DNA of 64,000 nt from Paraspadella gotoi (lineage: Eukaryota; Animalia; Chaetognatha). Positions 40,539-62,290 of this stretch are shown here, one piece after another. The DNA is taken from NCBI GenBank assembly GCA_051294375.1, contig CM119267.1, positions 24,625,783-24,689,782 on the forward strand. Reading direction: 5' to 3'. A program made the position numbers and the translations under genes. Below the pieces are notes generated by a model that saw only the letters and a list, made by a program, of their open reading frames with translations, had not been told where the DNA came from and made no database searches. The number at the start of each line of letters is the position of its first letter. Position 1 is the first letter of the stretch.

Positions 40539-43500
40539 GGTGATCAAAGTTTTGGTGATTTCCGGCGCGTGTTGCCTCATGGTTCTCGGAATCGCCGTCA
40601 TTGTTTCCGGTGCAATGATTATCGTTGACATCGACTACAGATCGGTTGGCAGAGAAAGTCTCCTTTCTTTTCTTCTCTTCCTTTCTTTTCTTCTCTTCCT
40701 TTCTTTTTCTTCTTTTCCTTTGTTTTTTTTTTTTGCCTTCGTTCTTTCATTTGTTCTTTTCTTTTTGTCTACGTTCTTTACTTTGTTCTTTTCTTTTTAT
40801 TTATTCGTCTTTCTTAGTTTTGTGATTTTCATTTATTTTTGTTAAATTTCGTTATTTTCATTTGATAAATTATTTTTTTTACTTTGACCAGTTAAATCGA
40901 TCAATCAAATTATATCGAATCGATAGTTAAAATCAATAATCAAATAAATGTATCAATCATTCAAAAGAAACAAAGTCTTCTTTTAATCATTCAAAAAAAA
41001 AAACAATCGGTCAGTGGAACCAATTCATCAATCTATTAATCAATAAATCAATCAATCCAATCAATAAATCACTCAAATCAATCAATCACTACAATCAATC
41101 AATTCTTTCATATCAGCAAAGAGACCTTTGCTTTTGTTTAATCAATCCAAGAAAAATCAGTTGGTCAAACAATCCAATCAAATCCAATCAATCAATCACT
41201 TAAATCAATTAATAAATCGATAAATCACTTCAATCAATAAATCAATAAACTAACCAATCAAATAATCAATCAATCACTTAAATCAATTAATAAATTAATA
41301 AATCGATCAATCACTTCAATCAATCAATCAATAAATCAATAAACTAACCAATCAAATAATCAATCAAGCAATCAAATCAATCAATCAATCTAATCAATCA
41401 ATCAATAACTCCAATCCAATCAATCAATTCTTCCATATCAGCGAATCAGCGAAGAAGCCTTTGCTTTCGTTCCCGATCTCATCGACTTTAATTTCGGCGA
41501 AAAACCAGGAGACGAAAAAGCCGCGTCGAGGCTGTTGAACGTCAGTTCCTCCATTTGATGGGGCTGTTTGCTGAGGCTGGGGATGCTGAGGTTGAGGTTG
41601 AAGTTGATGTTTATGTTATTATTTTGTTAATGTTCTTTACTTTACTTTGCTCTTTTGGTTGTCTCTCTCTCTCTCCCTCGTTCTATTTTCCCCCTCCTCT
41701 CTCTCTCCCTCTCTCCCCCGCCGGTCTCTCTCAATTTAGATAATATTCATTAATTAATAAACATTGCTAATCTGATATCTATTTGTCTGAAACAAAAGAA
41801 CATCTTGACCAAAGTGGAATCATACGTCATCATTCTCTGCTCCGTCTACATAGGATGTGGAGGCTTCATCTTTCTCATGGGTGAGTCGAAGGTTTGAGTG
41901 ACCGTAATCATCTCGTGTGAACACAATGACAACAATGACCACAATATGACCCCAATCAGCCGTTGAAATTGATACAACGTATATAAAATAATCATCCATT
42001 TATGTCATAAATCATCTAGTATCTTGCCTTCTGACTTTGGACAGGCTTTGTTGGTTTGAGGCCTTCATTCCTAGCTAAAGGTAGGTACTAACTAGTCTCT
42101 CATCAGGGAAAAGAGGTAAGTAGGGTAGGGAATATATTGGTAATGGGTAAACAGATATAACAAAGGGTATCAAGGGTACATAAAAGGGAGAGAAGGGAGA
42201 GGGAAGGTTTGCAGACCCCGAGACCGAGAGGAGAAGTTGAGAGAGTGAATCCGATCTCCAAGACTCTATCCGTGACTCCGGGGATGAAGAGGAGGGGACG
42301 ACGAGGGGAGGAGGAGGCGTTGAGAGGGGGAAGAGAAGGCCCGGGGGAGAGAGAGGTTCTGGCGGTAGGGTGAGACTCTATCTTGCAATATATTTATAGT
42401 TTTATCCTTATCAAATAATAAATTTTCAAATTTTTTTTTTAAATTTTTATTAAAGATTCAGATTTCTCATAAAAAGTTAAATCAAAAATATTAAACATGT
42501 TATCATAAATTTTTTGTCTTCAGTATCAAAATTGGAAAAAAGGTCAAAATTCTCAACTTTTTAACTCCTGAAGTAGAAACTATTATATGACAAACCATTT
42601 TTGTCGTTTTTCGCAGCTTTAACATCAAAATATTATATAATAATATAGAACGTATTTTATAAAAGTTTCTTTTTTTTTTGGTCGTATCCGAATCTGTTAT
42701 TAAAATTTTTAAAAAATCAATTTGAAATTTTACAAATTCATACGGATATTATTACAAAGAAAATACAATTTGCTTAACTGTTATGCTAAATTTTTTTTAA
42801 AAAAAGCATGATTTAATTACATATACGGAGGCAGCAAAAAAATATTGTTAGCCGGCTTAATCTTTTCATCACCCTAATAATCAAGACTCTCTCACACTCA
42901 CAGTCGAGTTTATTCACTCCCAGAGCAACTTGCTTCCATGAATCTTTATGCAATTGAAACATCATACCAATTCATTGATAGGGAAGCCAGGAACTCTGGG
43001 AGTGAATAAACGAGACTGTTAGAGAGTCTAGATTAAAAGCTTGCAGGGACTTGCTATGTCATTATCTTGTAAGAGTGATAGAGGCCTTAAACGACCAAAG
43101 CCTGTCCAAAGTCAGGGGCAAGATAGCTTATTAATTGAATGAATGGATAATTTTCATATAGGTTGCACCAATTTCATAATATTTTTTAAACACAATAATA
43201 AATAACTTTTTTTAAAGATCACTTTGCCAATATAACTGACTTGCCTTTTTCTTCAGGCTTTTCCAGCCTCATTGTTTTCTCCTGCAAACGACGACGCAAC
43301 TGTTGCCTTCGATGTCATCTCGTTTGTCACGCTCTCTGTATCGTTCCTCCCATCGTCGTCATCGTTTGCGCCTTCGCTCCTTTTGCAGTTGGATTCGTCA
43401 AAGGTTTTTAGTTTTTCGGTCGGTCGGTCTGTCGGTCGGTCGGTCTGTCGGTCGGTCGGTAAGTCTGTCCGTCGGTCTGTCCCATTTATGTTCAAATTGC

Positions 43501-60800: not shown

Positions 60801-62290
60801 GAAGAACTGTCGACCGACGGAAAAGCCGATCGACGCGAAAAAGTTGCCCGTCTGCAGAAGGGAAAAGAGCGGTCCGTATCTTAATCAATCGGTGGGATAG
60901 GCAAATTAATCAAAAACATTATTAGTAAGTTTATTTATTAATTTTGATCCTCGTCAGTAAATTAGTTAAATATGCTCTTTAATATTTTTGTGAAGGTCAT
61001 TATTATCATCGTCATCATCTGCAGAATCTTTGTCATCATCTGCATCATCATCTGCATCATTGTCTTTAGTATCATTAGTATCGCCGCAAATCAACCCGAG
61101 CTATGATCTCTCGCAATCATCTGTACATTCACATTATCTGCGTCATCATCTCTATCTCAGATTATCTGGAGGGCTACAAAGATTGGCGAGTCAAGTCGAG
61201 CGACGTCGCCTTTCGTCGTCTCGACAAATCGGCCGTCGGGTCGCCCTTTAACGAGGAGTCTATGGCATACGAGGGTGCGAAGGAGGGAGGGAGGAAGAGG
61301 GGAGAAGGGGAAGGGGAGGAAGGGAGGGAAGGATAGGGGGAGGAAGGGAGAGAGGATGAGAGAGCGTTGGAAGAGAAAAGGAGAATGGAAGGGAAGTGAG
61401 AAAGGAAAAGAAAGATAAAAATTGTTGTGATTCTCCATCCCTCCATACCTTGATGTTGTGATTCTCCATCCCTCCATACCTTGATGTTGTGATTCTCCAT
61501 CCCTCCAGCCATTCAACGCCTCCCCGGATGTGGTGATAAACTCTGGGGCTGGAGTCACGTCGACCGGAAGCTGCGACTCGGCGCTTCCGTCGCCATTTGT
61601 ATTTTGGCCTTCATCGGTGAGAGTCGTCGTCGTCGTAGTCGTCGTCGTCGCTGAGCAACTCTATAAGTTACTTTTCGGTCGGTCGGTCGGTTCTGTCCAT
61701 TAGTCTGTCCTACTTACGTTAAAAATGCTCATAACTTGCATATATTTGGTTATAATCTAAGGGACTGCTAGCGCCGCCTTAAGTAAATCCTAAAACTATA
61801 AAGAATAAAAGACGTAACTCCAATGCAGTACGTATCATAAATATAAATACAATATAAAAAATATTTGTTGTAGATAAATTTTATTGTCATAGAGTCATGT
61901 GATCACAGGGAAATATACGTGAAAAGAAAGTCACTGCGGCGCAACACATTGGATGGACCCATCTTGTTTTTATTGATGTTTTTTTTTCTTTCAGTTTTGG
62001 AAGTTTTTCTAAGTTTTTGTTTCATCACCGAAAACAACGTCGCCGAACTCAGAGAAGCGGAGGAGAAGAGGGTGACAGTTTATTTTAAAGCATTAATAAT
62101 ATATATCCATTTGTGACATTGATAAAAATCGTTCAGGCGAAAGAAGAATTACAAAAGAGGCAAAAGACTTTACCTGTAACAACGAAACAGGAGGAAAAGG
62201 TCTTGATCCTTATTTTATTTATTTTTTTTTAAACGAATTTACGAAATTGAAGTGACAAAAGAGGAGAAAGAGGCGGCCATGCGTAGATAG
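57807..62290 (+). CDS. Tetraspanin 3' exons, copy 2 (mostly in frame)
   Basis: Exons 57807-57893, 59584-59659, 60257-60405, 60751-60924, 61161-61274, 61509-61616 (LPGCGDKLWGWSHVDRKLRLGASVAICILAFI), 61995-62071 (VLEVFLSFCFIT), 62137-62199; probable stop near 62290. Confidence 0.65.
58110..58570. repeat. ~50-bp minisatellite (garbled counterpart at 50230-50860)
   Basis: atgtgcaaagcgctatgtaaagggacggaggggatgaaatgagatatgat units. Confidence 0.85.

Follow-up and report, generated by a model that had tools for sequence, protein, structure and literature searches.

A divergent tetraspanin gene of Paraspadella gotoi with a putative mucin-lectin exon cassette in a large-loop intron

The DNA analysed here, referred to throughout as the window, is a stretch of 64,000 nucleotides from the chaetognath Paraspadella gotoi (assembly GCA_051294375.1, contig CM119267.1, forward-strand positions 24,625,783 to 24,689,782). 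It is animal nuclear DNA, with spliced genes, many micro- and minisatellites and four N gaps (4015-4039, 5533-5706, 6300-6743 and 49700-49724). Our subject is the plus-strand locus at about 40.5-62.1 kb, which is best described as one ordinary, if fast-evolving and lineage-specific, animal tetraspanin gene. One of these introns, within the part of the gene that encodes the second, large extracellular loop (EC2), contains a same-strand cassette of five further exons: a mucin-like exon and four exons of a lectin domain of the C type (CTLD). The initial annotation had read the whole arrangement as a single giant tetraspanin.

The tetraspanin gene and the cassette in its intron

The gene model was rebuilt exon by exon and checked by translation, and every exon border is AG/GT. 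All exons lie on the plus strand. Exon T2 (40506-40644) encodes the first transmembrane segment (TM1), ends in phase 0 and falls within the match to the Pfam tetraspanin profile (PF00335); an alternative acceptor at 40539 corresponds to the start proposed in the initial annotation. T3 (41546-41657; phase 0 in, 1 out) carries the first extracellular loop (EC1) and the first half of TM2, and ends in a weak donor, TTG/GTTGTC. It is followed by T4 (43257-43403; phase 1 in, 1 out), with the end of TM2, the inner loop KRRRNCC and TM3. EC2 begins in T5 (44703-44815; phase 1 in, 0 out; donor AAG/GTGAGT), which contains IQRRFNCCG and so includes the CCG motif, and it continues through the variable region in T6 (45010-45142; phase 0 in, 1 out), which runs from DYFCHGVYDFLCNPGCD to ICGK and contains four cysteines. 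The small exon T7 (45547-45603; phase 1 in, 1 out; RTMDSLCTYQGFPSTTTT) adds the seventh EC2 cysteine and a run of threonines. The remaining two exons lie far downstream. T8 (61509-61616; phase 1 in and out; IQRLPGCGDKLWGWSHVDRKLRLGASVAICILAFI) is intact and supplies the last EC2 cysteine, in the context PGCGDKLWGW, together with the first half of TM4; T9 (61995-62116) contains LEVFLSFCF and encodes TM4 with its glutamate, the cytoplasmic tail and a TGA stop. An upstream exon carrying the initiator ATG was not securely found, the candidate at 40319-40335 (METKK) being weak.

When T7 is spliced straight to T8, the exons give 309 amino acids (aa) of clean translation through canonical AG/GT sites to the stop. 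Against PF00335, for which the cut-off is 32.1 bits, this direct model scores 41.1 bits and covers positions 1-223 of the 225 in the profile, and the initial identification of a real tetraspanin is upheld. It contains four hydrophobic segments (residues 15-33, 71-89, 105-123 and 262-280, with peaks of 2.35-2.88), called from Kyte-Doolittle 19-residue peaks rather than with a dedicated topology predictor. Its EC2 is about 124 aa long and has eight cysteines. The CCG motif (FNCCG) stands at residues 163-165, the last EC2 cysteine (PGCGD) lies 13 residues before the run LRLGASVAICILAF, and the polar residue of TM4 is present as a glutamate in LAFIVLEVFLSFCF. Omission of T7 reduces the PF00335 score from 41.1 to 38.6 bits and the EC2 cysteine count from eight to seven. 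The gene is complete as a tetraspanin without anything from 46.7-61.5 kb, and the cassette is not required for EC2 closure.

The encoded protein is nevertheless very divergent. A phmmer search of the tetraspanin model against PDB sequences gave no match even at E<=10, and the 309-aa protein gave no match at E<=1e-3 in a search of 5.8 billion protein sequences. Its intron structure is also distinctive. Of the seven introns that separate identified exons, five are in phase 1, so that the ancestral phase-0 pattern is not seen; the second-last of them, between T7 and T8, is a phase-1 intron of 15.9 kb that spans an assembly gap. The nine ancestral tetraspanin introns (1-6 and 4a-c) are in phase 0, and derived phase-1 and phase-2 introns as well as frequent intron gain in the loops have been described (PMC2650405). 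The prevalence of phase-1 introns argues for a derived gene, and not against its membership of the tetraspanin family.

The five-exon cassette lies wholly inside the T7-T8 intron. Exon M (46688-47071; plus strand, like all cassette exons; phase 1 in, 1 out), the Pro/Thr exon first reported, is open, lacks a methionine and has a TAA overlapping its acceptor AG. It encodes a mucin-like, Pro/Thr-rich and putatively O-glycosylated segment, its 127 whole codons including 46 Pro, 28 Thr, 20 Lys, 14 Ala and 4 Ser, with tandem units of 18 and 36 nt. The CTLD exons follow. C1 (47397-47533; phase 1 in, 0 out) reads from CPSMETKG to FCYLFSKDARNWPEAQKFCQSM, and C2 (48010-48097; phase 0 in, 1 out; GGRLAEFDRVIDFQEIEKMTMGFGEIMSK) ends in the donor AAG/GTAGGT. 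C3 (48909-49022; phase 1 in, 1 out), with the acceptor GAAAG/G, extends from GDFRWISDNASV to LQPDEDKK and contains a QPD motif, and C4 (49559-49675; phase 1 in, 1 out; GTDRKHFSLCNYGRGTWLTNQCVRDSKAREAFLCQGSK) has the donor AAA/GTATTT. An alternative start for C3 at 48888 was rejected, as it has no AG acceptor (TAC/GG); with the border at 48908/48909 an AG is present, and the Pfam score, 19.3 bits for the earlier start, becomes 20.8 bits.

The CTLD is genuine, though divergent. It matches Pfam Lectin_C (PF00059) at 20.8 bits (cut-off 22.6, E=6.9e-4) over profile positions 3-99 of 107, and within the 589-aa model discussed below the score is 15.4 bits. A phmmer search against the PDB returned 115 sequences at E<=10; all 60 of those listed are proteins of the C-type lectin fold, and the best among those listed are the PLA2 receptor (9.3e-8), DEC-205 (2.4e-7) and NKG2D (2.3e-6). 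The alignment to CD23 pairs query residues 24-135 with chain residues 17-129, almost the whole domain. All six canonical CTLD cysteines are found in the 152-aa domain, at positions 2, 26, 43, 124, 136 and 148 (contexts CP, FCY, FCQ, LCN, QCV and LCQ, in that order), representing the four core cysteines and the two extra N-terminal cysteines of long-form CTLDs. The initial annotation was therefore right to recognise a lectin domain, which the PDB matches and the six cysteines bear out, but it spread over five exons what is encoded by four, and the Lectin_C score stays under the cut-off. As read from the sequence, the sugar-binding motifs are mixed: QPD is present (LQPDED), WND is replaced by WLTN and the tryptophan of WIGL is missing (MTMGFGE). 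Because of these last two changes, Ca2+-dependent sugar binding cannot be assumed; QPD would predict a preference of the galactose type, which the altered WND may do away with. The CTLD (154 aa) gave no match at E<=1e-2 in the 5.8-billion-sequence search, and tblastn and blastn detected no further CTLD copy within the window.

The end of C3 (CAGCCCGACGAAGACAAGAAGCGTGAGAG, 49003-49030) recurs about 100 bp downstream at 49107-49130 with a GT of its own (AAGAAGC/GTAAGAG), and a 10-bp tandem repeat (49057-49107) lies between the two copies; the second copy is possibly an alternative donor or a duplicated exon end. In addition, a 311-bp repeat with 95.8% identity occurs at 42075-42385, in a tetraspanin intron, and at 48092-48401, in the C2-C3 intron, and is either a young dispersed element or a local duplication.

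The exons that close EC2 and encode TM4 are present twice, with the second copy the cleaner, as had been noticed at the outset. They belong to a 7.8-kb tandem duplication of about 89% identity (blastn) on the plus strand, with a proximal unit at 49917-56551 and a distal unit at 57785-64000 that reaches the end of the window. Aligned columns of the two units are about 90-100% identical, and small indels are spread evenly, with no block specially conserved. In the proximal unit T8 (at about 53.93-54.04 kb) and T9 (at about 54.43-54.55 kb) are present as decayed copies, in which several 1-2-bp indels break the frame, whereas the distal unit carries the intact T8 and T9, along with a 50-bp minisatellite. 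The working 3' end of the gene is therefore placed at 61.5-62.1 kb, which gives the T7-T8 intron its length of 15.9 kb. Within the window, neither tblastn nor sensitive blastn revealed, upstream of the distal unit, another CTLD or further 5' exons of a tetraspanin. A 31-bp tandem repeat (61423-61507; 2.7 copies, 100% matches) ends at the functional T8 acceptor, the polypyrimidine and acceptor region of this exon being itself repeated; its proximal counterpart is a 32-bp version at 53839-53927 (85% matches).

Between the lectin exons and TM4, the initial annotation had also placed about five cysteine-rich exons. We find simple repeats there instead. The cysteine-rich translations stem from the 50-bp minisatellite, from the decayed version of it in the proximal unit, and from repeats that are T-rich or made of GA or ATT; stops occur in every frame, and a Pfam scan of the three plus-strand frames across 49725-53900 gave no meaningful match. 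The minisatellite itself, at 58137-58565 (8.8 copies, 87% matches; decayed counterpart at about 50.3-50.8 kb), has a translation (DEMRYDMCKALCKGTEGMKCDMICAK) that looks cysteine-rich and is interrupted by stops in every frame. The splice from 49675 to 49940 that was to lead into these exons is out of phase (A+TT, CCT, CTT, TGA) and meets a stop after three codons. With the cysteine-rich exons removed, the proposed protein loses about 240 aa.

Possible use of the cassette by the tetraspanin

The cassette begins and ends in phase 1, and its host intron is a phase-1 intron. Phases match from 45142 or 45603 to 46688, from 47071 to 47397, 47533 to 48010, 48097 to 48909 and 49022 to 49559, and from 49675 to 61509, and the path from T7 through M and C1-C4 to T8 stays open for 589 aa. 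The statement that these exons join in matching phase thus survives from T7 through the cassette and on to T8, and fails for the junction with 49940. The 589-aa model is the largest that is open, and a protein of about 830 aa is unsupported.

We propose that an ordinary tetraspanin gene captured an in-phase mucin-CTLD cassette in its EC2 intron by exon shuffling, and that the cassette, if it is used at all, would be an optional part of what the tetraspanin transcription unit encodes; we give this reading a probability of about 0.5. The five cassette exons are free of stops and frameshifts, whereas the adjacent pseudo-exons have decayed. A CTLD has to reach the secretory pathway, and no hydrophobic, ATG-started exon with a phase-1 end is present in 45143-46687, where the highest 10-residue Kyte-Doolittle hydropathy is 1.07. 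A single start-exon candidate, a weak one, lies further upstream at 43751-43871. The earlier observation that the mucin exon has no start or signal peptide of its own is in agreement with these results.

Two routes can be envisaged by which the cassette might be used. In the first, the cassette would be included between T7 and T8, and so inserted, within the variable region of EC2, after the seventh cysteine and ahead of the eighth. The product would be a 589-aa tetraspanin with a lectin and a heavily O-glycosylated Pro/Thr loop inside an EC2 of about 400 aa, the QPD-type CTLD standing right before the last conserved cysteine, and a plain 310-aa isoform would probably occur alongside it. In this arrangement the C-terminus of the CTLD would lie 8 residues (GSKTIQRLPG) ahead of the EC2-closing cysteine; the lectin would therefore sit directly on EC2, with the mucin segment forming a long loop rather than a stalk, and the lectin head on a glycosylated stalk that was originally pictured would have to be given up. 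Taken by itself, we regard splicing of the cassette between T7 and T8, to give a tetraspanin of about 590 aa, as a tentative suggestion that is more doubtful than not.

In the second route, C4 would serve as an alternative 3' end. If C4 is left unspliced, its frame remains open into a Val run encoded by (GTC)n, up to CQGSKSIYVVVVV and the gap. The protein would be a 'trispanin' with three transmembrane segments, a seven-cysteine part of EC2, a mucin stalk and a C-terminal lectin, a layout with the geometry of a type II lectin receptor. In either route TM1-TM3 would provide membrane insertion and the CTLD would be placed outside the cell. Tetraspanin isoforms with one to three TM segments and alternative C-termini are documented products of alternative splicing (PMC6773723), and the second route would fit among them. 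We judge the chance that one or other of these two forms is made to be even or marginally better, and leave the choice between them undecided.

Several points weigh against the proposal that the tetraspanin uses the cassette. A complete canonical tetraspanin is already encoded when the cassette is left out. Matching phases are weak evidence for a shared transcript, since among extracellular modules no class of exon is commoner than phase 1-1. The C4 donor (AAA/GTATTT) is the weakest in the locus, the sole one to lack both G(-1) and G(+5) when compared with the donors of the tetraspanin, the CTLD and the neighbouring alpha-L-fucosidase gene, and the sole route to TM4, from 49675 to 61509, depends on it. 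An assembly gap follows 24 nt beyond this donor, and the splice would skip 11.8 kb, including the decayed T8 copy, whose acceptor looks intact. For an alternative 3' end, no stop codon is present between C4 and the gap. The join between the 5' half of the gene and its 3' half runs solely across that scaffold gap. The Lectin_C match is under the Pfam gathering score (20.8 against 22.6), and neither module has a homologue in the protein database, which omits the source genome and its close relatives. Finally, a gene model with mostly phase-1 introns is unusual against the published pattern (PMC2650405), and it rests on the splice sites chosen.

Inclusion of the cassette in the tetraspanin is thus best called frame-compatible and putative: possible, and unproven. 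What survives of the giant-tetraspanin idea is a same-strand, phase-compatible cassette in the EC2-coding part of the gene; what does not is the need for it, given a complete 309-aa tetraspanin without the cassette. Our literature searches turned up no published tetraspanin-CTLD fusion, and a search on domain insertion into EC2 returned general tetraspanin papers.

Several other explanations have to be weighed against capture of an optional module. The cassette could be a silent relic: part of a lectin gene, truncated at its 5' end, that was duplicated into the intron, makes no protein and looks intact because it is young. Segmental duplication and decay have both taken place at this locus, as seen in the T8 and T9 pseudo-exons and in the 311-bp repeat (96% identical), and the sub-threshold CTLD, the absent WIGL tryptophan, the WLTN in place of WND and the weak C4 donor would all fit such a relic. 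On the other hand, the five exons comprise about 279 codons without a stop or frameshift and have canonical splice sites at 10 of 10 positions, whereas the adjacent pseudo-exons gained several frameshifts at about 7-10% divergence, and no parent copy of the CTLD is found elsewhere in the window. We consider a relic unlikely, if still worth serious attention.

Genes nested in introns are common, and the cassette might be an independent same-strand gene of this kind, whose first exon, encoding a signal peptide or signal anchor, and last exon or stop were missed or fall in the gap and which the tetraspanin always skips. The order of stalk followed by CTLD is that of type II lectin receptors, and the weak C4 donor and the open frame into the gap would suit a terminal exon. 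The candidate exon at 43751-43871 (MKLHTILRKLSMNQNFLKWQEALVIHFLIFIYIFKCQIFL) is a hydrophobic one, with an initial ATG and a phase-1 end. However, it lies upstream of three tetraspanin exons, all of which would have to be skipped, and it has a lysine in its hydrophobic stretch, a poor donor and no Pfam match, while the 1.5 kb between T6/T7 and the mucin exon contain no start or signal exon. A nested gene therefore seems improbable to us, though by no means far-fetched.

The gap invites a different concern. At 49700-49724 a run of 25 N, within a (GTC/GTT)n microsatellite, stands between the two TM4 copies on one side and, on the other, the cassette with the 5' exons of the tetraspanin, and a scaffold join at such a place could have wrongly united two loci into a chimeric 'gene'. 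Against this, the two halves are complementary in strand, order and phase and together give a full-length Pfam match, which argues that the join is right; moreover, no other tetraspanin 5' or 3' exons occur in the window, and the tandem duplicates lie within one contig. An assembly artefact is very unlikely. As for a constitutive giant tetraspanin of about 830 aa, with a mucin stalk, a five-exon CTLD and about five cysteine-rich exons in an EC2 of about 600 aa, its modules are collinear on the same strand, the cassette has no start of its own and phases do fit across the mucin exon and those of the CTLD, as well as between 49675 and 61509, but it is scarcely credible when the cysteine-rich exons turn out to be mini- and microsatellite with stops in all frames and no Pfam match, the junction with 49940 terminates after three codons, the indels between the duplicate units spare no 'exon', the direct splice alone yields a full tetraspanin and the position of the CTLD next to the closing cysteine leaves no room for a head on a stalk.

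The main interest of the locus lies in whether the cassette is ever spliced in. The EC2 variable region determines the binding partners of a tetraspanin, and to our knowledge tetraspanins are regarded purely as proteins that organise other membrane proteins laterally. If our proposal is true, this natural tetraspanin would be the first in which the EC2 variable region either contains a folded lectin domain or is followed by one. Such a protein would carry its own ligand-binding, putatively glycan-binding, module and would indicate that EC2 tolerates insertion of a whole domain, which would be relevant where extracellular vesicles are engineered with grafts in EC2. Exon shuffling, too, would be cleanly exemplified by the locus, with a phase 1-1 cassette in a phase-1 intron. 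Should the cassette prove to be skipped or dead, what is left is an ordinary lineage-specific tetraspanin with a cluttered intron and a warning about chimeric gene models.

Neighbouring genes and repeats

Upstream of the tetraspanin, on the plus strand, lies an alpha-L-fucosidase gene (35752-38958) of at least four exons, with an N-terminal signal peptide; its first exon scores 103 bits against PF01120. The best database relatives of its last exon are 49% identical, and the named ones are scattered among frogs, rotifers, mussels and insects. A best match of just 49% indicates that the protein database contains neither the source genome nor its near relatives, which in turn explains the missing homologues for both the tetraspanin and the CTLD.

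Further upstream, an exon-sized open reading frame on the minus strand (21119-21484) contains a fragment of a protein kinase domain (PF00069, 50.4 bits, profile positions 53-119), and that strand probably carries a kinase gene, upstream of the fucosidase. At 24890-24961, on the plus strand, there is a gene for tRNA-Met with the anticodon CAT, with an Rfam score of 59.6 bits and agreement from ARAGORN; the Rfam scan of the window found nothing besides this one tRNA. Long open frames of up to 414 aa on both strands at 32187-33431 consist purely of low-complexity acidic, basic or Val/Ser runs, and are most likely simple-sequence DNA, not a gene. A dispersed repeat of about 200-270 bp, similar in size and spread to a short interspersed nuclear element, is present in five copies that are 87-93% identical (17954-18224, 18358-18588, 34236-34507 and 37381-37571, the latter two on the minus strand, and 42967-43178). 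One copy lies directly 5' of tetraspanin exon T4 and another within the fucosidase gene.

Comparison with known systems

An EC2 with eight cysteines is the pattern of an established class of tetraspanins, for example the TspanC8 group. Like canonical tetraspanins, the gene described here encodes four TM segments, a CCG motif after helix B, a glutamate in TM4 and an eight-cysteine EC2 of 124 aa; the last cysteine stands in a GC..L..W context and is followed, about 13 residues on, by TM4, which is split by the last intron, and the Pfam score exceeds the gathering cut-off. It departs from them in having no significant match to PDB tetraspanins or to the 5.8-billion-sequence set, in lacking a second CC pair in EC2 and in holding a lectin cassette in its EC2 intron. 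Its introns are mostly in phase 1, whereas the nine ancestral ones are in phase 0 (PMC2650405).

With genes nested in introns, the locus shares the placement of foreign-domain exons wholly inside one host intron of 15.9 kb. Unlike such genes, its exons are on the same strand as the host, show no start that can be recognised and fit the phase of the host at either end.

CTLDs are known from other multi-pass membrane proteins. Polycystin-1 has an extracellular CTLD in its N-terminal ectodomain. In placozoan G-protein-coupled receptors with a CTLD the domain is likewise fused to a polytopic membrane scaffold, as it would be here, but it too is part of the N-terminal ectodomain and is not inside a loop between TM helices (PMC12013895). 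Among alternatively spliced tetraspanins, which include mono-, di- and trispanins, a normal four-TM form coexists with altered variants, much as a four-TM form would here coexist with an altered-EC2 or three-TM variant; the known variants delete or truncate, and none has been described that gains a folded foreign domain such as a CTLD (PMC6773723).

The type II C-type lectin receptors, such as CD23, Mincle, dectin-1, NKG2D and the asialoglycoprotein receptor, offer a parallel in the order of membrane anchor, neck or stalk, and CTLD. The CTLD of the locus aligns with that of CD23 over almost its whole length. The EPN/QPD triplet is the sugar-selectivity motif of CTLDs, and by sequence the QPD of the locus occupies this position, although WLTN replaces WND. 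The anchor would also differ, consisting of three tetraspanin TM segments and a seven-cysteine part of EC2 instead of a single signal-anchor helix, and the stalk would be mucin-like, with no coiled-coil neck.

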